Below are positions 21,819 to 48,846 of a DNA stretch of 64,000 nucleotides, in pieces. The stretch covers positions 1-64,000 of the forward strand of contig CDROCS010004567.1 of NCBI GenBank assembly GCA_977020255.1. Reading direction: 5' to 3'. The notes below the pieces were generated by a model. The model ran no database searches. It saw only the letters and a list, made by a program, of their open reading frames with translations, and had not been told where the DNA came from. The translations under genes were made by a program, and so were the position numbers. Position 1 is the first letter of the stretch; each line of letters opens with the position of its first letter. Source of the DNA: Obrimoposthia wandeli. Taxonomy: Eukaryota.

Positions 21819-21834
21819 TTGACTCATGTGTCAA
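21819..21834. promoter_or_regulatory. 16-bp palindrome TTGACTCATGTGTCAA (putative RutR-like TetR operator)
   Basis: Near-perfect palindrome; the same motif recurs at 31211 and 48831. Confidence 0.7.
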
Positions 21835-21903
21835 CTTTATATTTTACAATTTTTAATATAGAGCTAAAACCGACAAAAACCATCATTAATTCGAGCTTGT
21901 CGA

Positions 21904-22063
21904 TTTCACATCGTGGAATCTGTAGGTTTCCTTGAACTCAGTATTCATATAGCCCCTTATTTATCAGGGGTATGCATAGTGTTTGACCATAATAAAAAAC
22001 TGACATTTCACATGGTGGAATCCATCTTGTTTGCCTGAACCGGCTGTTTTCCATAAGGTGAAA
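21904..22063. promoter_or_regulatory. Three IclR-type sites: TTTCACATCGTGGAA (21904), TTTCACATGGTGGAA (22006), TTCCATAAGGTGAAA (22049)
   Basis: Repeated 6-3-6 imperfect palindromes between bhcR and bhcB. Confidence 0.7.
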
Positions 22064-22222
22064 TTGAAGCAAAAAAATTAGTTACAGATTAAACATCATC
22101 TACAAATTAAGAGTCACCTTGAGACTCATATAGATACATACGACTTACCACACGATTAATGTCACGGCTAAAACCACGACTAACATGACGGCTAATACCG
22201 CAAGAGATATTAAGAGGAACCT

Positions 22223-23200
22223 ATGAGCAGTTCACCTAAACCAACCATGAATATTCCAAGCTATGAGGATGTACTCGTTGCCCACGAACGTATTAAACCC
22301 TTTATTCACGAAACACCCGTATTAACCTCACGTTTCCTAAATGAATTAACAGGTGCTGAGCTGTTTTTTAAATGTGAAAACCTGCAAAAGGCAGCTGCTT
22401 TTAAAGTGCGCGGTGCCTGTAATGCTGTTTTTGGTTTAACAGACGCTGAAGCAAAAATTGGTGTTGCTACACATTCATCAGGTAACCATGCTTTATCGTT
22501 ATCTTATGCAGCCGGACGACGTGGCATACCCGTTACCGTAGTGATGCCACGTACAGCGCCGCAAGCTAAGAAAGATGCTGTCATTGGCTACGGCGGAATC
22601 ATCGTTGAATGTGAGCCTTCTACTAGCTCACGCGAAGCCGTATTTGCTGAAGTTGTTGCCGAATCAGGTGCTGATTTTGTTCATCCTTACAATGATCCAC
22701 GCGTTATCGCAGGTCAAGCCACTTGTGCTAAAGAACTCGTTAATCAAGTCCTTAATTTAGATACTGTGGTTGCGCCAATTGGCGGTGGCGGCATGATATC
22801 AGGCACCTGCTTAACACTATCTACTACTAATCCGACAATAAAAATTTATGCGGCAGAGCCTTTGAATGCTGATGATGCTGCGCGCTCATTTAAAGCCGGT
22901 CATATTATTGCCGATGATGCTCCAGAAACAATTGCCGATGGTCTAAAAGTTCCACTTAAAGATCTAACTTGGCATTTCGTTAAAAATCATGTCACCGATA
23001 TTTTAACGGCAACCGAAGACGAAATTGTCGCGGCAATGAAGCTTATTTGGATCCGCATGAAAATTGTAGTGGAGCCAAGCAGCGCGGTAACCCTAGCTAT
23101 TATTTTGAAAAACCCCGAAGTATTTAAAGGCAAGCGTATTGGGGTAATTCTCACTGGCGGTAATGTCGATTTAGATAAATTACCGTGGATGAATAAATAA
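22223..23200 (+). CDS. bhcB: Beta-hydroxyaspartate dehydratase (PLP, Ser/Thr dehydratase fold)
   Basis: FKCENLQKAAAFKVRGA, THSSGNHA, VMPRTAPQAKKD, ECEPSTSSRE, VHPYNDPRVIAGQ, GGNVDLDKLPW closely match Paracoccus BhcB as recalled; context with bhcC and bhcD. Confidence 0.88.
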   Translation: MSSSPKPTMNIPSYEDVLVAHERIKPFIHETPVLTSRFLNELTGAELFFKCENLQKAAAFKVRGACNAVFGLTDAEAKIGVATHSSGNHALSLSYAAGRRGIPVTVVMPRTAPQAKKDAVIGYGGIIVECEPSTSSREAVFAEVVAESGADFVHPYNDPRVIAGQATCAKELVNQVLNLDTVVAPIGGGGMISGTCLTLSTTNPTIKIYAAEPLNADDAARSFKAGHIIADDAPETIADGLKVPLKDLTWHFVKNHVTDILTATEDEIVAAMKLIWIRMKIVVEPSSAVTLAIILKNPEVFKGKRIGVILTGGNVDLDKLPWMNK

Positions 23201-23311
23201 GCCGACAAGTACCACAGTAAAAAATAAAACGAATTCAAATTTCGGTTCAAGTTCAAATTAAAAATCATACAAAAGCTCAATCTAAAAATTATCTAAATAT
23301 TAATTAAAATT

Positions 23312-24472
23312 ATGGAGAAGAAGATGACAACAGTAAACGATTTAGAAGTAGGTTATGACGTTCCGGCACTTCCAGGTATGGATGAAGCGGACATTCAAAC
23401 ACCTTGTTTGATTGTTGATTTAGACGCTTTAGAGCGCAACATTACTAAGATGGGACAATTCGCTAAAGAGATGGGTGTTCGCCATCGTGTGCATGGCAAA
23501 ATGCATAAATCTGTCGATATAGCACTTCTACAAGAGAAACTGGGTGATAGCTGTGGTGTATGTTGTCAAAAAGTATCAGAAGCCGAAGTTTTTGCGCGTG
23601 GCGGTATTAAAGATGTTTTAGTGTCTAACCAAGTACGTGATCCAGCAAAAATAGACCGTTTAGCACGTATACCTAAACTTGGTGCTCGTACTCTTGTTTG
23701 TGTTGATGATATTGAAAACGTTGCTGAATTAGCGGCTGCGGTTAATAAACATGACACGCAAATTGAATGTTTAGTTGAAATTGACTGTGGCGCGGGTCGT
23801 TGTGGTGTAAGTGAAGGTCAGCCAGTAGTTGATATCGCTAAAGCGATTGCCGCAACACCGGGCTTAACTTTTTCTGGTATTCAAGCTTACCAAGGCGCTA
23901 TGCAGCACATGGAAAACTTCCAAGAACGTAAAGAGAAGATCGATATCGCTGTTGGTATGGTTGCTCGTACAATCGACATGCTTAAAGCAGAAGGGCTTGA
24001 GTGTGACATCGTTGGTGGTGGCGGTACAGGTTCATATTACTTTGAAGGCAATTCAGGTGTTTTCAATGAATTACAATGTGGTTCTTATGCATTTATGGAC
24101 GCCGATTACCAACGAATTCATGATGAAAAAGGTGAACGAATTTCAGAATTTGAAAACTCATTATTCATCTTAACGTCTGTTATGAGTCACACCAAAGCTG
24201 ACAAAGCTATTTGTGATGCGGGTCTTAAAGCGCAATCAGTAGATAGTGGTTTACCGTACATTTTTGGTCGTGACGATGTTGAATACATTAAGTGTTCTGA
24301 TGAACATGGTGTTATTTCAGATGCTAACGGCGCATTAAAAATTAATGAAAAGCTAAAACTAGTACCAGGGCATTGTGATCCAACGTGTAACGTTCACGAT
24401 TACTATGTTGGCGTACGTAATGGCAAAGTTGAAACCTTATGGCCAGTTTCTGCACGTGGTAAAGCGTACTAA
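23312..24472 (+). CDS. bhcC: Beta-hydroxyaspartate aldolase (3-hydroxy-D-aspartate aldolase)
   Basis: EVGYDVPALPGMDE..IQTPCL, HGKMHKSVD (PLP Lys), ELQCGSYAFMDADY, PGHCDPTCNVHD, WPVSARGK. Confidence 0.92.
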   Translation: MEKKMTTVNDLEVGYDVPALPGMDEADIQTPCLIVDLDALERNITKMGQFAKEMGVRHRVHGKMHKSVDIALLQEKLGDSCGVCCQKVSEAEVFARGGIKDVLVSNQVRDPAKIDRLARIPKLGARTLVCVDDIENVAELAAAVNKHDTQIECLVEIDCGAGRCGVSEGQPVVDIAKAIAATPGLTFSGIQAYQGAMQHMENFQERKEKIDIAVGMVARTIDMLKAEGLECDIVGGGGTGSYYFEGNSGVFNELQCGSYAFMDADYQRIHDEKGERISEFENSLFILTSVMSHTKADKAICDAGLKAQSVDSGLPYIFGRDDVEYIKCSDEHGVISDANGALKINEKLKLVPGHCDPTCNVHDYYVGVRNGKVETLWPVSARGKAY

Positions 24473-24484
24473 TAAGCTATTTAT

Positions 24485-24509
24485 GCCCTCAGTCTTTGTT
24501 GAGGGTTTT
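24485..24509 (+). terminator. Weak intrinsic terminator or stabilising hairpin between bhcC and bhcD
   Basis: CCCTCA-gtctttgt-TGAGGG followed by TTTT. Confidence 0.4.
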
Positions 24510-24532
24510 GCTATTTTTCTAGGACATTAATT

Positions 24533-25555
24533 ATGAGTGATTCAAAAGAAAACCATTTACCAGAAAGCTCTTTACCAGTTAGAAAAGGCGTATCTGTAGT
24601 TTCAGAAGCGGTATGCCAAGAAGTTATGGGTAGAGCCGATGCTTTTACTGCGGTAGAAAACGTGTTTTCTGCTATGGCTAAAAATACCGCCTACAATTTT
24701 CCGGTAATACGTGAAGCCATTGGCCATGCGGATGCTCTCTATGGTTTTAAATCAGGCTTCGACCGTGACGGTATGGTGCTAGGTTTAAAATCAGGGGGGT
24801 ACTGGCCAGGTAATGTGCAAAAAGATCTGACTAACCACCAATCCACCGTGATTTTGTTTGATCCTGATACAGGCCAGTTAAAATCCCTTGTTGGCGGCAA
24901 CTACTTAACTGCCGTGCGTACTGCTGCCTCTTCTGCTGTTTCTATCGCGCATTTAGCCCGTAAAGATTCAAAAGTGCTAGGTATGGTAGGTGCAGGTCAT
25001 CAATCTACTTTTCAATTACGTGCTGCTGTTGAGCAACGTGACTTTGAAAAAATTGTTTGCTGGAACTTCCACCCTGAACAAATACCTAACCTTGCCGCAG
25101 TGGCTGAAGAATTAGGTTTACCGTTTGAATCAGTAACGCGCGAAGAACTTTGTGCTCAAGCGGATGTCATTATTACCATTACTTCAGCTTTTGAGGCGTT
25201 AATAGATAAAGACTGGATCAAGCCCGGCACTCACATTGCGTGTATGGGAACCGACACTATAGGTAAGCAAGAAGTTGATGCTAAATTACTGACAGTAGCT
25301 AAGGTCTTTACCGATGAATTAGCGCAATCAATTATGCTGGGTGAAGCCCAACATGCGATTGCACAAAAACTCATTCATCAGAGCGATATTGTGCCAATTG
25401 GTGAAGTGATTAACGGCACTAAAACCGGCCGTACTTCAGCAGAGGATATTACCTTGTTTGATGGTACTGGTGTTGGCTTACAAGATTTAGCTGTAGCCTC
25501 AGTAGCTGCTGAATTAGCTGAAGCTAAAGGGCAGGTTACTTACTTCAACTTATAA
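24533..25555 (+). CDS. bhcD: Iminosuccinate reductase (ornithine cyclodeaminase/mu-crystallin family)
   Basis: AYNFPVIREAIGHADALYGFK.GFD, GGYWP.N, NHQSTV.LFDPDTG, GAGHQS.FQ, FDGTGVGLQDLAVA. Confidence 0.9.
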   Translation: MSDSKENHLPESSLPVRKGVSVVSEAVCQEVMGRADAFTAVENVFSAMAKNTAYNFPVIREAIGHADALYGFKSGFDRDGMVLGLKSGGYWPGNVQKDLTNHQSTVILFDPDTGQLKSLVGGNYLTAVRTAASSAVSIAHLARKDSKVLGMVGAGHQSTFQLRAAVEQRDFEKIVCWNFHPEQIPNLAAVAEELGLPFESVTREELCAQADVIITITSAFEALIDKDWIKPGTHIACMGTDTIGKQEVDAKLLTVAKVFTDELAQSIMLGEAQHAIAQKLIHQSDIVPIGEVINGTKTGRTSAEDITLFDGTGVGLQDLAVASVAAELAEAKGQVTYFNL

Positions 25556-29670: not shown

Positions 29671-29879
29671 TATTGACCTACTTCTTATAGTGTTAAGGTT
29701 AGAAATTAAGACGGTAATCAACGCTTTCTTTAGGGAACATGTTGAATACCAAAATTAATCCGTTTGGTATGAGTTGTCGTAAAGTTATATCGTTGTTTTT
29801 GTTTTAATAAGCTTCAGATAAATCAGTGAAATGCACCTTTCATCAAGAAAGTCCCCTAATACCTGTTAGCAAGGATATA

Positions 29880-30142: not shown

Positions 30143-30220
30143 TAAGTAGGGTTGAAGAGTGCAAAATACTGCGCCACAGTAGTGGGGTTCAGTATGGCGT
30201 TTTCAAAAAATGTGGATAGT

Positions 30221-30294: not shown

Positions 30295-31122
30295 TTAGAA
30301 ACGCCATACAGCAAGAAGTTGTGCAGCGTTATCATCAGTACCTTTCTCACCTAGTTTGTTTTTCCAGTATTGGTATTCAACACCAACGAATAAACGCTGT
30401 GCTTTATGACCTAATACTTCACCTAAATCTAAGCGAATTTGTGGTTGAAATAGAATCCATGATTCGAGCTCTGTTGTGCCAAAATTATTAACTTGAGTAC
30501 GGCCGTCAATGTATTCTAAATGACCTTCAATGCTCCAGCTTGTTGAACCAATTTTAAAGGGATATGCCCAAGCAAAATCAACCATAAAGCTAGAGTCTTC
30601 ATCAACTACGGTAAATACAGGAGAATCTGCACTGCCACCACCTTGATGGATATAACCAGTAACATCAATTTGCGCAAAGGCAAAACCGGGTAAATCTAAG
30701 GCGAATCTCACACCAGGTAATACCCAAGCACTGTCTACTTCAGGAGCGAAGTTAAAACCAGCAACAATACCAATATCTTTTACTGGGCCAAAGCTAAGAT
30801 CATTACCACTAATTGCGCCTAAGCTAAAGTTTGAATACCACTCGCCGTAAAGCTCGCTTGAATCTGCTACTGGGAAGTTAGCATCGTTATTTACGGAGTA
30901 ACGAGAATAATCCATAAAGAAGAAGTTATCGCCGTATTCCCAGCCACCTGCATGTTGGAAAGTGATGATAGTAGTGTCAGCGGTGCCACCGGTACCTACT
31001 CGTTCTAATTCACCTAGTGCTTGTAATTGTACTTCTGTATTTCCCCAGATCTCTGCTGAAACCATTGGCGCATTTAACGCAGCGGTTAATGCGAGGGCGG
31101 TAAGTGGTGCTGAAATTTTCAT
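30295..31122 (-). CDS. Nucleoside-specific outer-membrane channel (Tsx/OmpK/DUF5020-like)
   Basis: Signal peptide; TFQHAGGWEYGDNFFFMD, ELYGEWYS, GVEYQYWKNKLG; terminal Phe; purine-catabolic context. Confidence 0.75.
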   Translation of the reverse strand: MKISAPLTALALTAALNAPMVSAEIWGNTEVQLQALGELERVGTGGTADTTIITFQHAGGWEYGDNFFFMDYSRYSVNNDANFPVADSSELYGEWYSNFSLGAISGNDLSFGPVKDIGIVAGFNFAPEVDSAWVLPGVRFALDLPGFAFAQIDVTGYIHQGGGSADSPVFTVVDEDSSFMVDFAWAYPFKIGSTSWSIEGHLEYIDGRTQVNNFGTTELESWILFQPQIRLDLGEVLGHKAQRLFVGVEYQYWKNKLGEKGTDDNAAQLLAVWRF

Positions 31123-31210: not shown

Positions 31211-31226
31211 TTGACACATGTGTCAG
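31211..31226. promoter_or_regulatory. 16-bp palindrome TTGACACATGTGTCAG
   Basis: Perfect 14-bp core TGACACATGTGTCA in the divergent channel/aminotransferase promoter. Confidence 0.75.
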
Positions 31227-31305: not shown

Positions 31306-32427
31306 ATGACATTTAAATCATTCAATCCACCACAAAGAATTTTAATGGGCCCTGGTCCTTCAGATGTAAGTGCACGAGTATTGTCCGCATTGGCTAGGCC
31401 AACGATTGGTCATCTTGATCCGTTATTTATCAATATGATGGATGAAGTAAAAACGCTACTTCAATACGCTTTCCAAACCAAAAATGAATTCACTATCGCC
31501 TTATCAGCACCGGGTTCAGCCGGGATGGAAGCATGTTTTGTGAACTTAGTTGAAGCGGGCGACAAAGTGATTGTTTGTCGTAATGGTGTTTTTGGTGACC
31601 GTATGATTCAGAACGTTACCAGAATAGGTGCAGAGGCCGTGGTTGTTGACTCTCCTTGGGGGCGTGCAGTTGAAACGCATAAGGTAAAAGCTGCGTTACA
31701 TGACCACCCAGATGCTAAATTCTTAGCCTTTGTTCATGCAGAAACCTCAACGGGTGCGCTGTCAGATGCTAAAGCCCTATGTAAAATGGCTCAAGAGCAT
31801 GATTGCTTGACGATTGTCGATGCAGTGACATCATTAGGAGGCGTAGAGCTGAAAGTGGATGAATGGGGCATAGACGCTATCTATTCGGGTACGCAAAAAT
31901 GTATGTCTTGTGTACCAGGTATATCGCCCCTTTCCTTTAGCCCTAAGGCTGTAGCAGTAGTACAGAATCGTAAAACTCAAATACAAAGTTGGTTCTTAGA
32001 CCAAACGTTAGTGATGGGCTATTGGTCTGGTGAAGGTAAGCGTAGTTACCATCATACTGCCCCAGTAAACTCTTTATATGCCTTACATGAAGCCTTGGTA
32101 ATGCTTCATGATGAAGGCTTAGAAAATAGCTGGGCACGTCATAAAACACAGCACGAAGTATTAGCTAAGGGACTGAAAGAGTTAGGTATTGAGTTCATCG
32201 TACCTGAAGAAGAGCGCTTACCTCAGTTAAACGCTATCTACATTCCTGATGGTGCTGATGATGCTAAAATACGAGATTACCTATTAGAGCACTACAATCT
32301 TGAAATAGGTGCTGGTTTAGGTGCTTTTGCTGGTAAAGCATGGCGTATAGGTCTTATGGGACATGCGGCTAAAAGTGAGAATGTTGCCTTATGTTTAACG
32401 GCTTTAAAAGACGCGTTACACCAATAA
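31306..32427 (+). CDS. Class V aminotransferase, alanine-glyoxylate/serine-pyruvate (AGXT) type
   Basis: RILMGPGPS, PTIGHLDP, VHAETSTG, IVDAVTSLGG, YSGTQKC (PLP Lys), YHHTAPVNSLY, WRIGLMG. Confidence 0.85.
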   Translation: MTFKSFNPPQRILMGPGPSDVSARVLSALARPTIGHLDPLFINMMDEVKTLLQYAFQTKNEFTIALSAPGSAGMEACFVNLVEAGDKVIVCRNGVFGDRMIQNVTRIGAEAVVVDSPWGRAVETHKVKAALHDHPDAKFLAFVHAETSTGALSDAKALCKMAQEHDCLTIVDAVTSLGGVELKVDEWGIDAIYSGTQKCMSCVPGISPLSFSPKAVAVVQNRKTQIQSWFLDQTLVMGYWSGEGKRSYHHTAPVNSLYALHEALVMLHDEGLENSWARHKTQHEVLAKGLKELGIEFIVPEEERLPQLNAIYIPDGADDAKIRDYLLEHYNLEIGAGLGAFAGKAWRIGLMGHAAKSENVALCLTALKDALHQ

Positions 32428-34223: not shown

Positions 34224-34260
34224 AAAAAGCCACATTACTTGCGTTGCAAATAATGTGGCT
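34224..34260 (-). terminator. Terminator of the puuD-glcB transcript, beyond the MITE
   Basis: AGCCACATTA...TAATGTGGCT stem with T-tract on the minus strand. Confidence 0.75.
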
Positions 34261-34267
34261 ATTAATA

Positions 34268-36737: not shown

Positions 36738-36740
36738 TTC

Positions 36741-37946: not shown

Positions 37947-38290
37947 AGTCTTTCCTTTTGTACGCCTACTCGTCGTTGGCGTTTTATAATTTTATGATTA
38001 ACTAGTTAATTATGTTGTTGAATAATTTTCCTTATAAAAATTATTCTTCTTAAGCGATGTTGCCTTAGACCCAGCTAGGCAACCGTCTGTTATAGGTAGT
38101 ACTGGTATTTTTATTAGCTTCTTAGCCTTTAATAAGTGAAGCGTTTTATAATTTAAAAATTAATATACCATTAGTGAATTAGTTGATGACTGAAGTTTGT
38201 GAGTACAAAGAAGAAGCACGGAATTTATAACTATAAATGAGTACTTCTGATGCCGTATTCGCAGCTTTCAGGTATTAAATAATTTATTAA

Positions 38291-39637
38291 TTAAACTTTT
38301 TCGCCCATGATATGGGTAGCTTTAACGTGTCTATCGTCACCTAGCATACTCAACACGAACAATTTCTCGGTTAAAGTGTTACAGCGTTTGATGCGTACAT
38401 CCATTAAAGGGGTTGCTTGATAATCAAGCACGATAAAGTCAGCTTCAGCGCCTTGGACGAAGTTACCAATAGTCCCTTCTAAATCTAAGGCAACAGCGCC
38501 ACCTAAGGTTGCTAAATATAATGATTTGTATGGGCTTAATTTATCGCCACGTAATTGCTGGGTTTTATAACCTTCGTTAAGTGTGGTCAACATAGAGAAA
38601 CTACTGCCTGCACCAATGTCGGTGCCTAGCCCCACATTCACATCAAATTCTTCCGCTTGTTTCAAGTTAAAACAACCGCTGCCTAAAAATAAGTTTGAGG
38701 TCGGGCAAAAGGCAATTGCTGAATTGGTATCACTTAAACGCTGGCATTCATGATCGTGCAAATGTACACCGTGAGCAAAAACGCTACGGCGACCTAATAA
38801 ACTGCTTTTATCGTACACATCAAGATAACCGTCACTGTCTGGAAATAATTCACTGACCCAAGCAATTTCATCTTTGTTTTCAGATAAATGGGTATGTAAA
38901 TAAACACTAGGATATTCTTTTAATAACTCACCGGCTTTATTCAGTTGTTCCGTTGAACAGGTCGGAGCAAAACGTGGCGTTACCGCATATTGTAATCTGT
39001 CAGTGTTATGCCATTTTCAATGAGCTTTGCTGTCTGCATAGCCTGATTCAACAGTATCTGATAAATCATCAGGACAGTTTTGATTCATCAAGACTTTACC
39101 GCAAATCATGCGTAACTTTTTCTGTTGAGCGACGGTAAAAAAGGCTTCAACAGATTCTTTATGTACTGTGCCAAATACTAATGCGGTGGTGGTACCGGCA
39201 TCTAATAATTGGGTTAAGAAAAATTCAGCAACACGTTTACCGTGTTCAATATCAGCAAATTGTTTTTCTTCAGGGAAAGTGTAGTTTTCTAACCATTCGA
39301 GTAATTGTTCGCCGTAAGAGGCGACCATTTCGGATTGTGCATAATGTACATGAGTATCAATAAACCCAGGCATGATTAGACCATTGTCATATTGAGTAAC
39401 GACAACGTCGGCGGGTAACGTTATCAGTAAATCCTTGGCGTTACCTAAAGCTTCAACTAAGCCATTGTTGATGACTAATAGTCCATCTTCAAAGTACTGA
39501 TAACTCTCTTCTTCTGATACTTTGGCAGGATCCGCTAAAAAGTGCAGTACTTCGCCACGATATGCTTTGCGGCCGGTACTTGTAGCTTTACTTATTGCTT
39601 CACTCGTTGAAGAAGTGTTTGCAGTGTTGTTCGACAT
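38291..39637 (-). pseudogene. guaD: Guanine deaminase with one in-frame TGA (39017..39019); likely indel error or recent lesion
   Basis: PGFIDTHVHYAQ, LEWLENYTFPEE; after the stop KWHNTDRLQYAVTPRFAPTC...HTHLSEN; AHGVHL, LGTDIGAGSS. Both ORF halves are in the same frame. Confidence 0.85.
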
Positions 39638-39749
39638 ATTTCTTAACCTATTACTTATTGAATTTTACTATTACTGGGTGTTTTACTGTTTTTCACGGCC
39701 TAATACCGTGCTATCTATTTACTCTTTTACGAATGAAGTTTTCATCGCT

Positions 39750-40265
39750 TTATTGCTTAGCTGCTAATGTGATCACAAGCGAACCGTCGAGTTTTTCAAC
39801 ATCACAATTATCACCTTCTCCGCCGCGATCGACCACGAGAAAGTCACTGACTTCATTAAGCGCTAAACAAAAGTGATGCCAAGTACCTTTGTGGTAATTT
39901 ACGCCTTGCTCACCGCTTGCTAAAAACACTTTAATGGCTGATATATCAAGCTCACCTGCGGGTGCAACCACAACCACATAAGGTTGCTTGCCCATAGGTA
40001 TAAATGCTTGGCTGCCTAAAGGATGGCGCTCCATCATTTCGACAGGTAAAGGAAAAGCCAGCGGGGTGGAACGAAAAATATTAATTAAGGTTTTACCCTG
40101 TTGCTCAGCAACATCAACATCAGCAAGATTATGATAACGCATAGTATGGCCATCATTAATGGCGAAATGTTCAGCACTTTCGGACACTGAAATTACATCC
40201 CCATAAGCGGAGAAATTCTCTGCCGTTAGCTCTTGGGGTACAACATTAATGATTTTACTGGTCAT
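39750..40265 (-). CDS. allA: Ureidoglycolate lyase
   Basis: LTAENFSAYGDVI, MERHPLGSQAFIP, QGVNYHKGTWHH, FLVVDRGG. Confidence 0.92.
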   Translation of the reverse strand: MTSKIINVVPQELTAENFSAYGDVISVSESAEHFAINDGHTMRYHNLADVDVAEQQGKTLINIFRSTPLAFPLPVEMMERHPLGSQAFIPMGKQPYVVVVAPAGELDISAIKVFLASGEQGVNYHKGTWHHFCLALNEVSDFLVVDRGGEGDNCDVEKLDGSLVITLAAKQ

Positions 40266-40364
40266 CTTAATCTTCTCTGTTAACTGTTAATATTTTTCTA
40301 CTGGCTAGAAACTATTGTTCTTTATTACTTCGTGCTTACTTGGGTACTAATACTTAAAGGCAAG

Positions 40365-40706
40365 TTAGCTACCACGGTAAGTAGAGTATCCATAAGCTGT
40401 TAGCAATAATGGAATATGGTAATGAGTACCGCTGGCGTCGATTTCAAAAACAATATCAACGTATGGGTAAAAACCTGCTTCGTTGTTCGCGTTAAAATAA
40501 ACTGCGGTGGCAAAATGCATACGGTAAACACCCGCTGGTAATTTTTCGTCATCAGCTAATAAACCCGGTAAACGACCATCAACATTAGTGACTCCGCCGT
40601 TGACTTCTTTCCAACTATCACCGTCTTGAGCAAACAAAGTAATAGGGACATTTTGCGCAGGTAAACCACGGGTAGTATCAAGTATATGGGTAGTAATTTG
40701 ACTCAT
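40365..40706 (-). CDS. uraH: 5-hydroxyisourate hydrolase
   Basis: ITTHILDT, TNVDGR, FYPYVDIVF, HYHIPLLL.AYGYSTYRGS. Confidence 0.95.
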   Translation of the reverse strand: MSQITTHILDTTRGLPAQNVPITLFAQDGDSWKEVNGGVTNVDGRLPGLLADDEKLPAGVYRMHFATAVYFNANNEAGFYPYVDIVFEIDASGTHYHIPLLLTAYGYSTYRGS

Positions 40707-40739
40707 GTTCGTTCCTTTTATCTTAGCTGTTACTGTGAA

Positions 40740-41261
40740 TTAGCCTTCAGCTAATGTCTTTTCGAAGGCTTTGGTAATGCGTAGTTGGAAAATTTTACGC
40801 TGTTCTTCAGCTGCATTTACAAGTTCTTGAGCTTTGTTATTTGGTAGACGTGCTTGTAATAAATCAGACATTTGTTTAGCACTTTTACCTGTGGCACAAA
40901 CAATAAAGATAAAGCCAAATTTTTCTTCATAGTCGCTATTACCTTGAGAAAGTACTTCAAGTACATCGTCGTTGGCTTCTTTAACTAGACCTTGCTCGTT
41001 ACCGGCTAATTCTTTGGTATTTGCATACTTAGCACGTAAGCTACTTACATCACCAATTTTTGGGTGACCTTCAAATGCTTCAAAATAATCTTGTTCAGTT
41101 AAACCTAACCATGCATCATCAGCAGCTTGTGTTAATGCTGCTTCACTAGTAAATGGACGGGCATTAACCATTTTGTTAACCCACGTGCTTGAAGTACAAC
41201 ACTGCATGAACGTATGGCTAGCGTCTGCTGCTGGTAATTGGTTTAAATCTGCTAATATCAT
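40740..41261 (-). CDS. uraD: OHCU decarboxylase
   Basis: EAFEGHPKIG, SLRAKY, YEEKFGFIFIVCATGK, AAEEQRKI; ATG at 41261. Confidence 0.92.
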   Translation of the reverse strand: MILADLNQLPAADASHTFMQCCTSSTWVNKMVNARPFTSEAALTQAADDAWLGLTEQDYFEAFEGHPKIGDVSSLRAKYANTKELAGNEQGLVKEANDDVLEVLSQGNSDYEEKFGFIFIVCATGKSAKQMSDLLQARLPNNKAQELVNAAEEQRKIFQLRITKAFEKTLAEG

Positions 41262-41326
41262 GTTCGTTTCCTTGTTCTTTATCTTTAGCAATAGCATTTA
41301 AAAAATGCCATTGCTAAGCGTGTTAA

Positions 41327-42379
41327 CTAACCTTGGCGGTTACCAAAAACACGCATACGAGAAATACCACCATCAGGGAAGATGCTTAAACGTACATGAG
41401 TAAATGGTTGCTCTTTTTCAACGATGATCTCTTTAGTGAATAAGTGTTCACGATGAGCATATAACTTAGTGCTTGGAATTATGGCTGTCCAAGTTACAGG
41501 TGCTGCATTTGCTGTGAAATCATCACTATCACTGATACAACCTTCAAGCATAAAGGTATCAGGGAAGTTACCTTTAAAATGACAAGTATCAATGATTACC
41601 TTGTTGACACTTCCTGTTGCAGCAAGTTTAACAATTGACCAATCTGGACCTGGATCACGACGACGTTTAGTTTCCCAGCCATCACCCATGTTGGCGCCAC
41701 GGCCAGGCATGATTAGGTTGTTTTTATCACTGAAAAACATATCGCTTACTAACAATGCTTTTGCACCATTTTTAATCGAAGCTAAGTCAATGAGTTCACC
41801 GTCAACAAAATCATTCCAGTTTACATCTGCTTCACCATAAACACGGAAACGGGCAATACCACCATCAGGGAACATGGTTAAACGCACATGGGTGAAAGCA
41901 GTATCATTCGAGATTTCAAAAATATTTTGGCTATGCGCTTTAACGTCAGTCGCTTCAAAAATTGTCTGCCAAACGGTATCTGCATTGGGTTGTACTTCAC
42001 TTACACAAGCTTCAACAGATACTTTTTCTGGCGCGTTACCACGGAAGTAGTTAGTGTCGATATCAAAAGCGCGAATAACACCGCTAATGCCTAAACGGAT
42101 AATACACCAATCAGAATCACGACCATTGTTACGGCCATAACTTCTGCGTGATTCCCAACCGTCCATCCATTTACCACGTTCAGTAAATTTCTCTTCGATA
42201 AAAATACCACGGCCTACTTTTAATAAATTTTCCATTTCAGCGAAGAAATCATCACTACATGACAATGTTTCGCCACCTACTTTTTCACTGGCTAAATCTA
42301 CATAATGAGTTTTTAATTTTTGCTCTAATACCGCTTCTTCTGCCGACAATTTGTTTTGTGCTAACCAATCTTCAATCAT
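41327..42379 (-). CDS. alc: Allantoicase
   Basis: Two repeats: KWMDGWESRR and MGDGWETKRRR.PG.DW; FPDGGIARFRVYG / FPDGGISRMRVFG. Confidence 0.95.
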   Translation of the reverse strand: MIEDWLAQNKLSAEEAVLEQKLKTHYVDLASEKVGGETLSCSDDFFAEMENLLKVGRGIFIEEKFTERGKWMDGWESRRSYGRNNGRDSDWCIIRLGISGVIRAFDIDTNYFRGNAPEKVSVEACVSEVQPNADTVWQTIFEATDVKAHSQNIFEISNDTAFTHVRLTMFPDGGIARFRVYGEADVNWNDFVDGELIDLASIKNGAKALLVSDMFFSDKNNLIMPGRGANMGDGWETKRRRDPGPDWSIVKLAATGSVNKVIIDTCHFKGNFPDTFMLEGCISDSDDFTANAAPVTWTAIIPSTKLYAHREHLFTKEIIVEKEQPFTHVRLSIFPDGGISRMRVFGNRQG

Positions 42380-42502
42380 TTTTTATCTCCAGTTACTGCA
42401 TTGTCAGGCAAGCCTTTGTCGACTCTGATACATTGCGTGAATGTTAAATTTTTTATTAATAATTTCTTTTAATACTTATTATTAAACGTTTTTTTAAAAG
42501 CC

Positions 42503-43858
42503 TTACAACTGACCTTTAAGTAACGGTCGACCTATAGGCGAATTAATGAATTCATCTTGCTGATAAACATGAAAGCCACGGACAAAGGTATGGTTTACTT
42601 GACCAAAAACCTTTCGACCTGCATAAGGAGTAATGTTGTGCTTGTGCTTGATCATTTCGGTGGTAATGGTGTATTCAAACTTTTCATCAAACACACAGAA
42701 ATCGGCATGATTACCCACTTTAATTGCGCCTTTAACACTGTCTAAACCAGCAAATTTAGCTGTTTCCTGCGACATTAAACGCGCTAGATCTACCAAGGTA
42801 AAACCGCGATCTTTGGCTTCAGTCCAAATTAAAGAGAGGCCAAATTGCAGCGCTGAAATGCCACCCCATGCTTTTTCAATATCACCGGTATCAATATGTT
42901 TTAATTCTGGTGTACAAGGAGAGTGATCAGAAACGATAAAATCTAAGCGGCCATCGGTAACGGCTTGCCATAAGTGTTCACGGTTTTTGTTTTCACGAAT
43001 TGGCGGACAACATTTGAATAATGTTTTGCCATCTGGAATGTTTTCCGAGGCAATGGTTAAATAATGAGGGCAGGTTTCAGCGGTAAAGCGTAAACCTTCA
43101 GACTTTGCTTGAGCAATAGTGCTTAACGCTTCATCAGAGGATAAATGTACGATATGAACTTTACAGTTATCACCGGCTTCTTTTGATTCACGGGCCATAT
43201 CAACCATTAACGAGATAGCATTGTTTTCCCAACTTTTCGGTCGTGATTCTAAGAAAGAGTCGTATTCTTTAGTGATTTCAACGTCATCAAAATGACCACA
43301 ATCAAGTTCTGCGTGGATCAAATAAGGCACATTATGTTTAGCTAAAATAGGCATAGCAGCGCGCATATCTTTTGCTTCAACAGGGGGAAACTCTTCGATA
43401 CCTGAATCAATTAAAAAAGATTTAACACCTAAAACTCCTGCGTTGAGTAAATCATCAAGTTCATCAATATTGTCAGGGATAACACCACCCCAAAAACCAC
43501 AATCGACCCAAAGTTTATCGTCAACAGAATCGAGTTTTTCTTGAAAAGCGGCTTTCGTTGTCGTAACTGGAATACAGTTTAACGGCATATCTACTAAGGC
43601 GGTGATACCACCAGCAGCCGCTGCTTGAGTAGCAGTATTAAAACCCTCCCACTCAGTACGACCAGGTTCATTGATATGAACATGGGAGTCGACCAAGCCA
43701 GGCATAATCACTTGTTCGCCAAAGTCTTTAACTTCGCAACTTAATTCTTGGCCATAAGCATGAATAGCATGAATCAGCTGGTCTTTAATTTCGACGCAGG
43801 CTGCGATCATTTTTCCTGCAATGACTACTTGTGTACTTTGTAGAGCAAAATGAGACAC
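42503..43858 (-). CDS. allB: Allantoinase (metal-dependent)
   Basis: PGLVDSHVHINEPGRTEWEGF.TAT.AAAAGGIT, DMPLNCIP, AETCPHYL, FKCCPPIRE, VSDHSPC. Confidence 0.95.
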   Translation of the reverse strand: MSHFALQSTQVVIAGKMIAACVEIKDQLIHAIHAYGQELSCEVKDFGEQVIMPGLVDSHVHINEPGRTEWEGFNTATQAAAAGGITALVDMPLNCIPVTTTKAAFQEKLDSVDDKLWVDCGFWGGVIPDNIDELDDLLNAGVLGVKSFLIDSGIEEFPPVEAKDMRAAMPILAKHNVPYLIHAELDCGHFDDVEITKEYDSFLESRPKSWENNAISLMVDMARESKEAGDNCKVHIVHLSSDEALSTIAQAKSEGLRFTAETCPHYLTIASENIPDGKTLFKCCPPIRENKNREHLWQAVTDGRLDFIVSDHSPCTPELKHIDTGDIEKAWGGISALQFGLSLIWTEAKDRGFTLVDLARLMSQETAKFAGLDSVKGAIKVGNHADFCVFDEKFEYTITTEMIKHKHNITPYAGRKVFGQVNHTFVRGFHVYQQDEFINSPIGRPLLKGQL

Positions 43859-43951
43859 TTTGCTACTCCTCTAATGTAATGAACCTGAACTTGTGGAATA
43901 CGTTTTCTATTGGTAAATATGTGCGAGCATATCTTTGCTTTTTTTGGCTTG

Positions 43952-44851
43952 CTAACTGACTATCTCTTCAGTCATTAAGCTTTTTAATTCTTGCCAAGCG
44001 ATACCTTGTTTAGTGCTTTGTGGTTTGGCATCTTTTTGCTTATTGGCACCGGGGTTCGCTAATGCTTGTGACGCTAGCGCTGCTTGATAAAGTTGAATAA
44101 TTTCACCTGCAACTGACACGGCGACTTCCATCGGCAACTTACCTTGTACTTGCGGTAAACCAATTGGGCAGTTCATCTTTTCTACTAAGCTTTTAGCAAT
44201 ATCACGATGCTGGAATCTTTGTTGAAAACGGCGCCATTTGGTCTCCGAGGCAATCAAACCTAGATAAGCAAAGTCAGCACGTTTTAAAATATTGTGACTA
44301 ATCTCAAAATCGAGTTGATGGTTATGCGTCATTACAATGTAGTAACTATTGGCTGGCATAAGCGCAACTTCTTCAGCTGGATTATCACTGACTAGTGTGG
44401 TGACATTATGATAATTGCCCGAGTCATCAGGAAATTGATCTGCACGGCTATCAACCCAAGTAATGCTGCACGGTAAACCAGCAAGAATAGGCATGAGTGC
44501 TTTACCCACATGACCTGCGCCAAATAGCATGATATTGACACCACTGGCGCTAAAACTTTCAAACAATACGCTGGCATTACCACCACAACATTGACCAAGT
44601 TGTGCACCTAACTGAAAATGTTCTAGCTGTTGGCAATCATCACCAGCCATTAACAGCTGATGTGCATGTTTAATCACTTTATGTTCGAGGTGTCCGCCAC
44701 CTATGGTGTCAAAAATATCATCATGGGTTATCACCATTTTGGTGCCACTATTACGTGGCGTTGAACCAGTTACCCCAACAATTGTAGCGATAACATAGGC
44801 TTTGCCCTGCTTGTTCAATTGATGTGCTGCACCGGTCCAATTAATTTTCAT
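43952..44851 (-). CDS. xdhC: Xanthine dehydrogenase accessory protein XdhC
   Basis: GSTPRNSGTKM, TIGGGHLE, GQCCGG, FGAGHVG, VMTHNHQLD, CPIG; ATG at 44851. Confidence 0.92.
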   Translation of the reverse strand: MKINWTGAAHQLNKQGKAYVIATIVGVTGSTPRNSGTKMVITHDDIFDTIGGGHLEHKVIKHAHQLLMAGDDCQQLEHFQLGAQLGQCCGGNASVLFESFSASGVNIMLFGAGHVGKALMPILAGLPCSITWVDSRADQFPDDSGNYHNVTTLVSDNPAEEVALMPANSYYIVMTHNHQLDFEISHNILKRADFAYLGLIASETKWRRFQQRFQHRDIAKSLVEKMNCPIGLPQVQGKLPMEVAVSVAGEIIQLYQAALASQALANPGANKQKDAKPQSTKQGIAWQELKSLMTEEIVS

Positions 44852-44864
44852 GATGATATTCCTA

Positions 44865-47273
44865 TTACTTCGTCGCAGTTGCGTTATTTTCATGAGCGGC
44901 TTTAAGTGCTTCAACAGCAAATAACACACGTTCAGGTGTCGCAGGTGTGTCTAGCTTAGGACTAACTTTGTAGTCCGCGACACTGGCAACAGCATCTTTC
45001 AATGCCGACCAAACAGCCATACCTAACATAAACGGTGGCTCACCTACTGCTTTCGAGTTGTAAATAGTACGCTCTGGATTTGGAGCATTAGGTACTAACG
45101 CTACGCGGAAGTCTTCAGGTGCATCGTTAATCGCTGGGATTTTGTAGGTTGCAGGGTTGTTTGACAGTAAACGACCTTGTTCATTCCATACTAATTCTTC
45201 TGTCGTTAACCAACCCATGCCTTGAATGAAAGCACCTTCGATTTGACCGATATCAATGGCTGGATTAATTGAAGCACCAACATCTTGTAATATATCAGTA
45301 CGTACCGTTTTGTACTCACCGGTTAAGGTATCTATGATGACTTCAGAAACACAAGCACCTGTTGCGAAGTAGAAGAACGGACGCCCTTTACCACTAGCAC
45401 GATCATAATGAATCTTAGGTGTTTTGTAGAAACCGGTAGAAGATAATGAAACACGATTCATGTAAGCAATTTGAGAGAACTCAGCAAAGCTAAAAGTTTG
45501 CTCACCTACGATGACATTGTTGTTTTCAAAGTGAACTTGCTGCGCTTCAACGTCATATTTCTCACAAGCAAAGTCAATTAAACGTTGTTTGATGGTTTTA
45601 GCCGCTGCTTCAGCCGCTTTACCATTTAAGTCAGTACCTGAAGAGGCTGCGGTAGGCGATGAGTTTGGCACTTTATCAGTACGGGCAGCAGAACAAGCAA
45701 CCGTATCAACATCAACTTGGAATTCTTCAGCAACAATTTGCGCTACTTTAGTATTCAAACCTTGTCCCATTTCACTACCACCGTGGCTTAAGTGAATTGT
45801 GCCATCAGTGTAAACATGAACAAGGGCACCGGCTTGGTTCAAATGCTGTACCGTGAATGAAATACCAAATTTTACCGGTGTTAAGGCAATACCTTTTTTC
45901 AGTATGCTGCTAGTAGCATTGTATTCAGTGATCGCTTTACGACGGGCTTGGTAATCTGAACTTTCTTCTAACGATTCAATGATCTCGCTTAAGTTGTTAT
46001 GTTCAACGGTTTGATCATAATGAGTAACGTTACGTTCTTCTTTACCGTATAAATTAATTTTGCGGATTGCTAAGGGATCTTTACCGAGATGACGAGCAAT
46101 TTCATCCATGATCAATTCGATAGTCATCATACCTTGAGGACCACCAAAACCACGGTAAGCGGTATGAGAAACCGTGTTTAGTTTACAACGATTACCGGTA
46201 ATCGTTGATTGATCTAAGTAATAAGCATTATCTGAGTGGAACATCGCTCTATCAACAATCGCATCAGATAAATCAGGTGAGTAACCACAGTTACCATTGA
46301 CTTCGATGTTAATGCCTTTGATTTGACCCTTTTCGTCAAAACCAACGGTGTAGTTGTTTTCAAATGGGTGACGTTTACCTGTCATCACCATATCGTCTAA
46401 ACGCGCTAACTTAAATTTAACAGGACGTTTTGTTTCATTAGCAAGTAAAGCGGCAATACATGCCCAAGGCGCAGCTTGTGTTTCTTTACCACCGAAACCA
46501 CCACCCATACGGCGCATATCAACTAAAACTTTGTTTAGTGGAATATCAAGTACTTCAGCCACTAACTTTTGTACTTCACTTGGATGTTGTGAAGAGGTGT
46601 AAATGTTCATGCCACCATCTTCAGTAGGCTCTGCTGTTGAAACTTGGCCTTCAAGATACATATGCTCTTGACCACCAACAACTATTTCACCTGATAATTG
46701 ATGCTCAGCACTGGCAATAGCTGATTCAGAATCGCCACGTTTCAACGTATGTGGAGGACGAACAAAACTTTGCTTCGCTAAAGCGTCTTTTACGGTAAGT
46801 ACTGCTTCAAGCTCTTGATACTCAACTTTTGCAAGTTTAACGGCTTTACGCGCAAGGTCGAAACTTGTTGCTGCAACGGCGAAAAGCGGCTGACCAACAA
46901 ATTCTACTTTACCAATAGCTAGTACTGGGTCACCTGGGAATACCGGACCAATATCAGTATGACCGGGTACATCTTCAACGGTCATTACTTTTACAACACC
47001 TTCTGCAGCTTTAACGGCAGATAAGTCCATTGAAATGATGTTAGCGTGTGCCATGGTTGATTGACCAACCGCTGCATGTAATTCGCCACGAAGAGCTGGA
47101 CGGTCATCAACATAAATTGCTTCACCAGCGACTTGCTTGTCAGCACTTTCATGTTTTTTAGAACGACCTACGCCACCTAGGCCAATATTTTTTTGTCCGT
47201 TAACTACATCTTTGTCAGCGTTCGTTTTTACCTTTTGGGTATCGGCTTTTTTTACATCAATTAAAGTACGCAT
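44865..47273 (-). CDS. xdhB: Xanthine dehydrogenase molybdopterin subunit
   Basis: HESADKQVAGEAIYVDD, GGQEHMYLEGQ, RRMGGGFGGKE, AYRGFGGPQG, SKAVGEPP. Confidence 0.97.
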   Translation of the reverse strand: MRTLIDVKKADTQKVKTNADKDVVNGQKNIGLGGVGRSKKHESADKQVAGEAIYVDDRPALRGELHAAVGQSTMAHANIISMDLSAVKAAEGVVKVMTVEDVPGHTDIGPVFPGDPVLAIGKVEFVGQPLFAVAATSFDLARKAVKLAKVEYQELEAVLTVKDALAKQSFVRPPHTLKRGDSESAIASAEHQLSGEIVVGGQEHMYLEGQVSTAEPTEDGGMNIYTSSQHPSEVQKLVAEVLDIPLNKVLVDMRRMGGGFGGKETQAAPWACIAALLANETKRPVKFKLARLDDMVMTGKRHPFENNYTVGFDEKGQIKGINIEVNGNCGYSPDLSDAIVDRAMFHSDNAYYLDQSTITGNRCKLNTVSHTAYRGFGGPQGMMTIELIMDEIARHLGKDPLAIRKINLYGKEERNVTHYDQTVEHNNLSEIIESLEESSDYQARRKAITEYNATSSILKKGIALTPVKFGISFTVQHLNQAGALVHVYTDGTIHLSHGGSEMGQGLNTKVAQIVAEEFQVDVDTVACSAARTDKVPNSSPTAASSGTDLNGKAAEAAAKTIKQRLIDFACEKYDVEAQQVHFENNNVIVGEQTFSFAEFSQIAYMNRVSLSSTGFYKTPKIHYDRASGKGRPFFYFATGACVSEVIIDTLTGEYKTVRTDILQDVGASINPAIDIGQIEGAFIQGMGWLTTEELVWNEQGRLLSNNPATYKIPAINDAPEDFRVALVPNAPNPERTIYNSKAVGEPPFMLGMAVWSALKDAVASVADYKVSPKLDTPATPERVLFAVEALKAAHENNATATK

Positions 47274-48754
47274 TAGTAATTCACCACTCGTGTTTCAATA
47301 ACTTCTCTTGTATGGGCACTTTGTAGCTCTAAATAGCATTTCTCGATAAGATTTTGAGCTACGGTCATACGATACTTGTCAGAAGCACGTACATCAGTCA
47401 TAGGCTGAAAATCGGTCGCTAACGCTGATTTTGCTTGGGCTACTGATTCTTTTGTTAAGTTTTTACCTAATAATGCAGCTTCTGCCGCGGGGCCACGCTT
47501 AGGAATACCAGCCATACCGCCGAACGCTAAACGGATATTGGTAATTTTTTGGCCGTTTTCTGTAGGTGTTTGCTCAATGAAAAAAGCGGCTAATACAGCA
47601 GAAATATCATCATCTAAGCGCTTAGATATCTTGTAAAGCTTCAGTGTTTGTCCAGCAACGGGTTTAGGGATTGTAATAGACTTGATGAATTCAGAGGTTT
47701 GCAGAACTGTTTTCTTGTAATCAAGGAAAAAGTCTTCAACTAAGATAGTACGCTCTGTGCCGTTAAGGTGCAGCGTCATCGTTGCGCCAAGTGCGATTAA
47801 TGCAGGAGGCATATCACCGATAGGTGAAGCGTTACCTACGTTGCCGCCTAAGGTACCGGTATTACGAACTTGTTTCGCACCAATACGCTCAATCATGTCA
47901 CCAAGATCTGGGTAGTAGTGGTGTAAAGTATCGATAAAGTCACTGTAGGGTAATGCAGAGCCGATAATTATTTCAGACTCAGTTTCTTCAATAGTGGTTA
48001 ATTCGGCAACGTTACCAACATACACAAGCTTTTTGACAACCGCTAAGTTTTGAGTAACTGACAGGGCTAAATCGGTACCACCAGCCACTATCGTTGATTT
48101 TGGTTCGTTAGTTAATTCAGTCGCTAGCTCATCAATGTTCTGCGGAGCGATATAAGTATTACCATTACCATTTAATGTAGGGGTTGGTAATTTCTCTAGC
48201 TCAGTAAGTGTTACTAGCGTTTGTTGGTAATGCTTAGCAAATGAATCTTCTTGATTACCTTCGCTAGAAGTCATTGCCGCTTCAATAATTGAACGGTAAC
48301 CGGTACATCGACATAAATTTCCTGCTAATGCTTCTAATACCTCAGCGCGATTTGGTTTGTTGTTTTGTTTATGCAAAGCAAAAGAAGACATAACAAATCC
48401 AGGGGTACAGAATCCACATTGTGAACCGTGATTATCAACAATCGTTTGCTGGGCGTGATGTAGCTGAGCGCCTTCTTTCAAGTCTTCAACGGTAATCAAT
48501 TGCTTGCCATGTAAATTACCGACAAAGGTAATACAAGAGTTAATTGATTTATAAGTAAGTTGACCAGAATTTTCAGTATCTAGTTCAGCTAATACTACGG
48601 TACAAGCCCCGCAATCACCTGAAGCACAGCCTTCTTTTGTGCCAGATTTAAATTGCTCTTCACGTAAGTATTGTAAAACAGTCGTGTTAGGATCTAAGTT
48701 TTCAATCTTTACTAGCTCGTTGTTTAACAGGAATTTTATTGTATTTGCTACCAT
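47273..48754 (-). CDS. xdhA: Xanthine dehydrogenase small subunit (2Fe-2S/FAD)
   Basis: GTKEGCASGDCGACTV, SQCGFCTPGF, GNLCRCTGY, AGGTDL, KISKRLDDDISAV; TAATG coupling to xdhB. Confidence 0.97.
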   Translation of the reverse strand: MVANTIKFLLNNELVKIENLDPNTTVLQYLREEQFKSGTKEGCASGDCGACTVVLAELDTENSGQLTYKSINSCITFVGNLHGKQLITVEDLKEGAQLHHAQQTIVDNHGSQCGFCTPGFVMSSFALHKQNNKPNRAEVLEALAGNLCRCTGYRSIIEAAMTSSEGNQEDSFAKHYQQTLVTLTELEKLPTPTLNGNGNTYIAPQNIDELATELTNEPKSTIVAGGTDLALSVTQNLAVVKKLVYVGNVAELTTIEETESEIIIGSALPYSDFIDTLHHYYPDLGDMIERIGAKQVRNTGTLGGNVGNASPIGDMPPALIALGATMTLHLNGTERTILVEDFFLDYKKTVLQTSEFIKSITIPKPVAGQTLKLYKISKRLDDDISAVLAAFFIEQTPTENGQKITNIRLAFGGMAGIPKRGPAAEAALLGKNLTKESVAQAKSALATDFQPMTDVRASDKYRMTVAQNLIEKCYLELQSAHTREVIETRVVNY

Positions 48755-48830
48755 TATTCTTTCCGCTTTAATTTTGATTTTTAGTGTCGAGTTGAATATT
48801 CGTATGGATTCACTATAGCAGAATGGATAG

Positions 48831-48846
48831 TTGACACAAGTGTCAG
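48831..48846. promoter_or_regulatory. 16-bp palindrome TTGACACAAGTGTCAG upstream of xdhA
   Basis: Third copy of the motif, about 77 bp upstream of the xdhA start. Confidence 0.75.

Follow-up and report, generated by a model that had tools for sequence, protein, structure and literature searches.

A conserved palindrome at purine-catabolism and beta-hydroxyaspartate promoters of a Colwellia-like contig is the predicted operator of a RutR-family TetR paralogue

Our interest lies in a 16-bp palindrome, TTGACAC-AT-GTGTCAA, which recurs in a 64,000-nucleotide stretch of contig CDROCS010004567.1 (positions 1 to 64,000 of the forward strand, here called the window) from the Obrimoposthia wandeli assembly GCA_977020255.1. 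Its copies stand at the promoters of a purine-catabolism operon, of a nucleoside channel and aminotransferase gene pair, and of the genes for the beta-hydroxyaspartate cycle (bhc), and a TetR-family regulator gene resembling that of Escherichia coli RutR lies among them. We regard the palindrome as the predicted operator of this RutR-family TetR paralogue (33451-34077), a reading to which comparative sequence evidence lends a probability of about 0.75. The copies in the window are conserved putative binding sites, most likely for the neighbouring TetR protein. The assembly is that of a eukaryote (1.35 Gb, 6912 contigs), and the window contig, with a GC content of 39%, is bacterial: 30 kb of the window aligned to the Colwellia demingiae genome at 98-99% nucleotide identity, and the TetR protein is 100% identical to its counterpart in C. 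demingiae ACAM 459. The contig is a contaminant or an associated bacterium and not host DNA. Because it is a C. demingiae-like contig within a 1.35 Gb eukaryote assembly, the C. demingiae genome (G001) was taken as its genome-wide stand-in.

An earlier note, drawn from the sequence alone, had placed three palindromes at 21819, 31211 and 48831, all in divergent promoter regions, and had seen no other full copy. A pattern search with the idealised palindrome returned exactly three matches in the window at three or fewer mismatches, at these very positions, and gene calls put each of them between divergently transcribed genes. A 24-column weight matrix, symmetrised and built from 31 distinct orthologous sites with CG-centred look-alikes excluded, found no further position above 9 bits in all 64 kb. 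The matrix indicates that the motif in fact spans about 22 bp, its 16-bp core of TTGACAC-ww-GTGTCAA being bordered by conserved AAC and GTT. Site 2, the best match, carries these flanks as well, and site 1 has one degenerate half-site (TTGACTC). The xdhA-proximal edge of site 3 (48831) is located 77 bp upstream of the xdhA start codon (48754). The canonical RUT box of E. coli RutR, TTGACCA-nn-TGGTCAA, has no match in the window at two or fewer mismatches. Measured against shuffles of the window, the three matches by themselves are suggestive and not decisive, since shuffled sequences gave a mean of 0.59 matches at the same threshold and 2 of 100 shuffles reached three. This result leaves some room for the palindromes being chance or structural sequences (-35-like hexamers, hairpins) devoid of regulatory meaning, as does the fact that site 3 was also called as a terminator-like hairpin by a scan; no plus-strand gene ends at site 3, and therefore nothing is there to terminate.

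A genome-wide count in the host assembly gave 420 palindrome matches versus 332 reversed-control matches and was set aside as uninformative, the assembly being that of a eukaryote in which the palindrome is no commoner than its reversed control. In the 5.2 Mb C. demingiae genome the motif proved rare, in line with the expectation that it would not be common genome-wide: at two or fewer mismatches 4 sites were found versus 2 for the reversed-pattern control, and with a free centre and at most one mismatch 4 sites were found versus 0. Allowing three mismatches drowned the signal (10 versus 11 for the control). Three of the four sites are the orthologues of the window sites, while the fourth is 85 bp upstream of pbuX, a gene that scores above the xanthine permease pbuX cut-off. 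Every strong copy in this genome is thus a promoter site for purine uptake, purine oxidation or glyoxylate assimilation.

Eighty loci around TetR orthologues were then gathered and the window proteins were mapped onto them. The TetR gene closes a conserved operon that runs from xdhABC to puuD, or on to glcB, in Colwellia, Cognaticolwellia, Thalassotalea, Psychrosphaera, Shewanella, Paraglaciecola, Kangiella and others, and it is syntenic with the xdh operon in about 70 of the 80 loci. At least 15 further genomes from several genera, including Cognaticolwellia and Thalassotalea-like ones, have an orthologous site 71-96 bp ahead of the xdhA start codon, and such a site is usually present wherever a locus includes the xdhA upstream region. 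The position of site 2 is kept in 16 of 18 Colwellia loci (L016-L033), the two others (L031 and L032) having neither the site nor an aminotransferase match. A site upstream of the aminotransferase gene also occurs in G013, L041 and L064, one upstream of alc in Paraglaciecola, and one upstream of a stand-alone glcB in two further genomes. The sites are retained down to 52% xdhA identity, within intergenic regions that otherwise vary in length and sequence. Across several Alteromonadaceae genera, conservation was accordingly confirmed in the orthologous promoter regions of xdhA, of the aminotransferase/porin pair, and of glcB, alc and pbuX. Since all four C. demingiae sites stand at purine or beta-hydroxyaspartate promoters and the sites are conserved in orthologous promoters, their non-randomness is settled. 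The functional kinship of the four promoters speaks against chance, and conservation within such variable spacers effectively refutes it, leaving that explanation scarcely credible.

In two relatives with genomes of 6.5-7.9 Mb (G163 and G290), a purine-type site additionally precedes pgi, tal/yaaA, two TonB-dependent receptor genes, a xanthine/uracil permease gene, udk and deoB, and the tal/yaaA site was found again in G044. These sites suggest that the regulon may have expanded toward nucleoside and pentose metabolism in G163 and G290.

The regulator itself was evaluated through its domains, its position and its distribution. The RutR-like gene that the earlier note had seen inside the cluster is real: its product matches PF00440 (TetR_N) with 45.7 bits and PF08362 (TetR_C_3, YcdC-like) with 164.4 bits over the full profile, which is the architecture of the RutR-like subfamily, and aligns to E. 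coli RutR structures over its full length with an E-value of 1e-36. It reaches only 173 bits in the RutR equivalog model TIGR03613 (cut-off 368) and 150 bits in NF011584 (cut-off 230), and on these profile scores it is not an equivalog of RutR proper, the pyrimidine utilisation regulator of TIGR03613/PRK15008. Its recognition helix reads IPRANIHYYF, and the helix-turn-helix is invariant among orthologues down to 54% overall identity. The arrangement of gene and site is that of a local repressor, in that the site lies between the TetR gene and a divergent xdh operon in G248 and G298, a layout classical for TetR regulators, or ahead of an xdh operon ending in the TetR gene in most other loci; in G218 and G326 the coordinates place a site about 160 bp upstream of the TetR gene. 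Among 201 family genomes, a site with at most one mismatch occurs in 35 of 39 TetR-positive versus 53 of 162 TetR-negative genomes (Fisher p 5e-11), and many of the sites in the TetR-negative group are a CG-centred look-alike upstream of edd. The proposal that the RutR-like TetR reads the operator is supported by this synteny, the divergent layout and the co-occurrence, together with the IclR-less genomes and the canonical boxes at a second paralogue described below.

Analysis of the recognition helix elaborated on the proposed altered specificity of this RutR variant. In E. coli, RutR binds TTGACCA-nn-TGGTCAA and reads half-site positions 3-5 via the major groove; an A-T pair at position 3 ranks with the base changes that harm binding most, and the exchanges K51A, L55A and Y56A reduce affinity 14-, 70- and 17-fold, respectively (PMC2952853). 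The operator studied here differs from the canonical RUT box at half-site positions 2 and 3, with AC instead of CA. In a HMMER alignment, the base-contacting K51 and L55 of E. coli RutR correspond to Arg48 and His52 of the window TetR, a mapping that assumes the numbering of the paper to equal chain numbering minus one, and both residues are invariant within the TetR clade. C. demingiae encodes a second TetR_C_3 protein, 40% identical, whose helix LPKANVLYYF keeps the Lys and the Leu. Its gene lies beside deoB/udk-nupC-deoC and cdd-deoA (G001:C13:398000-418000, L102; G001:C3:142034, L104), and canonical RUT boxes with one mismatch are found in the deoB/udk and cdd-deoA promoters as well as upstream of an ExeM/NucH extracellular nuclease gene. 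The nupC gene beside this paralogue appears as two open reading frames. Taken together, the canonical boxes at a co-resident paralogue and the changes at base-contacting residues of the recognition helix lend support to an altered-specificity variant of RutR, as judged from sequence.

A third group of relatives, with Lys and His in the helix, is found near xdh in other genomes, with yet another inner core. The TetR-like genes near xdh in G088, G069 and G106 are 46-47% identical and closer to the second paralogue, for which reason they were not pooled with the purine TetR clade; a third box variant stands upstream of xdhA in G088 and G069, and none was found upstream of xdhA in G106. Such specificity differences fit the taxon-specific substitutions already noted for RutR motifs. 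The uracil pocket of E. coli RutR is formed by L74, W77, L78 and W167, of which L78 sets specificity (PMC4325133). In our alignment W77 and W167, between which uracil is sandwiched, are kept as W73 and W163, L74 is replaced by Ile, and L78 is replaced by Asn74, which is invariant in the clade. The pocket would then be of a similar type with the specificity residue changed, and a reasonable guess, though no more than that, is that the effector may be a heterocycle akin to uracil, for instance xanthine or urate, in each of which a uracil-like ring is present.

The regulatory link between bhc and purine catabolism, for which the earlier note had taken the shared operator as direct support, was upheld with a refinement as to its route. 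The bhcB gene is present in 20 of 55 Colwellia species genomes, and the spacer between bhcB and the IclR gene carries the site in 18 of these 20, always with the same slightly asymmetric half; bhc loci bearing the site also include L034, L047 and L017, of which L034 and L047 are the two found outside Colwellia. Within the variable Colwellia spacers the site usually lies 40-80 bp from the IclR start (range 40-217; in the window, 205 bp), with bhcB 280-550 bp away. Because the distance between site and start codon is 70-100 bp at the other targets, the bhcR-like IclR gene is probably the proximal target of site 1. A cascade from the TetR protein to BhcR is likelier than direct control of bhcBCD, since the site adjoins the start of the bhcR-like gene and is far from bhcB. 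In Paracoccus denitrificans, BhcR is an IclR-type, glyoxylate-responsive activator of bhc (PMC11323563). The window cluster itself is incomplete by NCBIfam equivalog cut-offs for bhcABCD and bhcR, which bhcB, bhcC and bhcD pass and the aminotransferase and the IclR protein do not. On these family scores it is a three-enzyme core with non-orthologous partners, among which the class V aminotransferase is a candidate glyoxylate aminotransferase in place of BhcA. In a separate locus (L128, G067:C1:2552500-2571000), a further TetR_C_3 paralogue, 49% identical and with the helix LPRSNIHYYF, adjoins malic enzyme-bhcDCB and an IclR gene; there are no purine genes nearby and no recognisable site. It hints at a recurrent tie between this TetR subfamily and bhc.

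Several observations weigh against the reading of the palindrome as the operator of the TetR protein. Four TetR-positive genomes lack a site at one mismatch or fewer, and no operator-like site above 9 bits occurs in 34078-34550, upstream of the TetR gene. In this species a terminator-like hairpin separates the TetR gene from glcB, and for these two reasons together autoregulation is not evident here; the hairpin also suggests that the TetR gene has its own promoter. In genomes lacking the TetR gene, a CG-centred look-alike palindrome precedes edd, which means that the arms by themselves are not peculiar to the TetR protein. The bhc site is absent from three related-genus loci in which the TetR gene lies beside bhc; since the site is general in Colwellia and absent in these three relatives, bhc is best viewed as a lineage-specific addition to the regulon. 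Consensus scans revealed no clear sigma-70 promoter overlapping sites 1 and 3, and the only predicted promoter of the porin gene lies downstream of site 2, so that occlusion is a possible rather than an established mode of repression.

Another possibility is that a different factor reads the palindrome, be it the BhcR-like IclR protein, a LacI-type protein or an unlinked regulator, with the TetR gene a mere neighbour. Site 1 does adjoin the IclR gene, and the near-identical CG-centred palindrome upstream of edd in TetR-less genomes implies that some other factor uses the same arms. Four genomes with both the TetR gene and the xdhA site, however, have no IclR homologue at an E-value of 1e-15 (G001 serving as positive control), and the IclR protein is therefore not the common reader. 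The centre of LacI-type operators is CG, that of the purine sites AT, AA, TT or AG. The divergent layout in G248 and G298 and the co-occurrence statistics likewise favour the TetR protein, and we consider another reader improbable. The perfect CG-centred palindrome with the same arms, which a search with a free centre retrieves as well, recurs in clusters in G097, G078 and G013 (loci L105-L108) and in many more genomes of the family; in G078 and G013 it precedes edd (phosphogluconate dehydratase). A separate, LacI-like regulator of sugar-acid genes probably uses it as its operator. Given their position upstream of edd and their occurrence in TetR-less genomes, these palindromes were set apart from the purine regulon.

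The promoter observations concern the direction of control. Most TetR-family proteins at catabolic operons are ligand-released repressors. The left arm of site 2 forms a perfect -35 hexamer, and 17 bp further on comes a weak, 4-of-6 -10 element. The porin, aminotransferase, CBS and TetR genes are represented among contigs from marine metatranscriptomes; the contigs on the aminotransferase side begin at 31259-31261, downstream of the -10 element, and none bridges 31139-31258. Such contigs cannot give transcription starts, strands or levels and provide a weak hint only; their ends are compatible with occlusion at site 2 and prove nothing. The alternative is that the TetR protein, like E. coli RutR at carAB, binds these sites as an activator or dual regulator that recruits RNA polymerase from an upstream position. 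The fairly constant position of the sites, 70-100 bp upstream of start codons, would suit such a role, as would the only consensus porin promoter, whose -35 element has the site about 30 bp upstream, and a far-upstream site is also where E. coli RutR binds to stimulate carP1 (PMC2952853, PMC4325133). With the family habit and the -35 hexamer within site 2 on the other side, we favour ligand-released repression and hold upstream activation to be unlikely, though with a real chance of being right and a better one than a different reader.

The sites, their rarity and conservation, their association with the TetR gene in occurrence and synteny, and the split between the paralogues are directly observed; from them we infer physical binding, repression rather than activation, an effector and a BhcR cascade, which may be combined as follows. 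A TetR dimer would occupy the sites at the promoters of the xdhABC-to-glcB operon, the Tsx-like porin/aminotransferase pair and the bhcR-like gene, and of pbuX elsewhere, and would hold these genes off until a purine-derived heterocycle binds the C-terminal pocket and releases it. The purine signal would permit expression of the bhcR-like gene, and BhcR together with glyoxylate would then switch on bhcBCD, so that purine-derived glyoxylate could be assimilated by malate synthase and the beta-hydroxyaspartate route. At nucleoside and pyrimidine genes, the second, canonical RutR paralogue would use TTGACCA-nn-TGGTCAA boxes. What would keep the regulons apart is a change of the inner two half-site bases (CCA to CAC), matched by Lys-to-Arg and Leu-to-His exchanges in the recognition helix. 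For the proposal in full, in which the two paralogues are insulated in this manner and the Asn-bearing purine paralogue senses a purine-derived ligand and turns on the bhcR-like activator, we would put the odds at about even.

The features of the window are collected in Table 1. The purine operon downstream of site 3 reads, in order, xdhA, xdhB, xdhC, allantoinase, allantoicase, OHCU decarboxylase, HIU hydrolase, ureidoglycolate lyase, guanine deaminase, PuuD-type urate oxidase and malate synthase G.

Table 1. Features of the window, from gene calls and NCBIfam and Pfam family scans
Feature	Position	Strand	Remarks
IclR-family regulator resembling BhcR	20826..21614	-	NF045644 BhcR top match, 152 bits (cut-off 350)
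Putative operator site 1	21819..21834 (extended 21815-21838)	.	1 mismatch, 25.7 bits; between bhcR-like IclR (-) and bhcB (+)
bhcB, bhcC, bhcD (beta-hydroxyaspartate dehydratase, aldolase, iminosuccinate reductase)	22223..25555	+	NCBIfam score/equivalog cut-off 588/550, 727/690, 566/500
GNAT, YbhB, PepSY genes and malic enzyme gene	between bhcD and Tsx-like porin gene		gene calls, family scans
Tsx-like outer-membrane nucleoside channel	30295..31122	-	Pfam Channel_Tsx 29.4 bits; predicted target on - side of site 2
Putative operator site 2	31211..31226	.	1 mismatch, 36.5 bits; between Tsx-like porin (-) and class V aminotransferase (+)
Class V (AGXT-like) aminotransferase	31306..32427	+	top NCBIfam match BhcA, 209 bits (cut-off 650); predicted target on + side of site 2
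Stand-alone tandem-CBS protein, 141 amino acids	32863-33288	-	between aminotransferase and TetR genes
RutR-family TetR regulator, 208 amino acids	33451..34077	-	TetR_N + TetR_C_3; putative operator reader
Terminator-like hairpin	34228..34260	-	15-bp stem, then T run; between glcB and TetR gene
Purine-catabolism operon	34551..48754	-	downstream of site 3; NCBIfam and Pfam assignments
Malate synthase G (glcB)	34551-36737	-	last gene of purine operon
xdhA	47273-48754	-	first gene of purine operon
Putative operator site 3	48831..48846	.	2 mismatches, 29.7 bits; between xdhA (-) and HupE-UreJ (+)
HupE-UreJ gene	+ side of site 3	+	gene calls, family scans

The tandem-CBS gene is kept at the same position in the closest Colwellia loci. 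The guanine deaminase gene (38291-39637, minus strand) contains an in-frame TGA at 39017-39019. By comparison with the intact C. demingiae gene (449 amino acids), two deletions, one of 2 bases and one of 1 base, lie 6 bases from each other and create this stop, after which the frame is restored. The gene could be a pseudogene, or the stop could stem from misassembly of a contaminant contig with low coverage. A 272-bp repeat resembling a miniature inverted-repeat transposable element, with terminal inverted repeats, is present in three window copies that are 87-91% alike (29871-30144, 34265-34540 and 49953-50228) and in at least 40 copies in C. demingiae, and one window copy separates glcB from the TetR gene. 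The summed depth of marine metatranscriptome contigs over this repeat is tens of times that of its flanks in three of four runs and reflects its many copies, and an Rfam search of the highly covered stretch 34277-34578 within this multi-copy repeat gave sub-threshold matches only.

Purines and nucleosides are traded between marine bacteria, and the beta-hydroxyaspartate route would, if our reading is true, be a dedicated purine-induced path by which cold-marine Colwellia assimilate purine carbon. An operator common to these promoters would give the first evidence at the level of cis-regulation for a coupling, in some marine gammaproteobacteria, of purine breakdown with a carbon-efficient assimilation of glyoxylate. 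A recent preprint (2026) reports that xanthine-degradation and beta-hydroxyaspartate-cycle genes rise together in another bacterium, a community member (10.64898/2026.10.28.762472). The paralogue pair would also provide a clean natural test case for a TetR recognition helix retuned against cross-talk, and could aid the design of orthogonal xanthine or urate biosensors. The basic notion that RutR-type regulators control purine catabolism has already been published from comparative genomics, which makes the gain incremental. Literature searches on RutR with xanthine dehydrogenase, and on the beta-hydroxyaspartate cycle with purine, turned up no experiments on a regulator of this sort.

Comparison with known systems places the regulon closest to E. 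coli RutR and to the RutR regulons that Leyn et al. (2016) predicted for Proteobacteria in RegPrecise. The window TetR shares with E. coli RutR its two-domain architecture and, in its predicted operator, a 16-bp palindrome with identical outer arms, TTGAC/GTCAA (PMC2952853). It differs in carrying Arg and His for K51 and L55 and Asn74 for L78, in the inner half-site AC rather than CA, in having no rut operon nearby, in targets that are purine and not pyrimidine genes, and in a TIGR03613 score less than half of the equivalog cut-off. By the same comparative logic as ours, Leyn et al. reconstructed RutR regulons in 68 genomes, including 5 of 9 'other Alteromonadales' genomes, a set that contains C. 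psychrerythraea 34H (PMC5343134). Their predicted targets include xdhABC (22 genomes, 5 taxonomic groups), guaD, pucL, pucM, COG3748, allA, allB and allC, as well as pbuT, tsx (Table S3), TonB-dependent receptors, deoB and udk, with uricase listed among the regulon members, and the authors noted taxon-specific motif substitutions and the extra paralogues rutR2 and rutR3 (PMC5343134). Many of the same genes are thus predicted to be under RutR-type control in both analyses, while the target table of that study holds no bhc genes, bhcR-like regulator, malate synthase or class V aminotransferase (PMC5343134). The purine and beta-hydroxyaspartate regulon proposed in the earlier note is consequently supported as a RutR-type purine regulon and is less new than was assumed there.

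The bhc portion of the regulon finds its counterpart in Paracoccus, where an IclR-type gene is likewise divergent from the bhc enzyme genes and where purine-derived glyoxylate has been named as a possible feed for the beta-hydroxyaspartate cycle (PMC11323563). Control there is exerted by BhcR, GlcR and CceR in a glycolate context, with no TetR operator or purine signal described (PMC11323563), whereas in the window the predicted purine operator stands in the promoter region of the bhcR-like gene, and the cluster has no bhcA. The window TetR and a further regulator can be likened by description alone. XdhR of Streptomyces coelicolor is a TetR-family repressor of xdhABC. By analogy only, it resembles the window TetR as a TetR-family regulator of purine catabolism beside xanthine dehydrogenase genes; it belongs to a different TetR subfamily with a different operator, in an actinobacterial context. 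Set against these systems, the regulon appears to be a well-supported addition to an already predicted kind, and its modestly new parts would be the link to bhcR and the insulation of two RutR paralogues.

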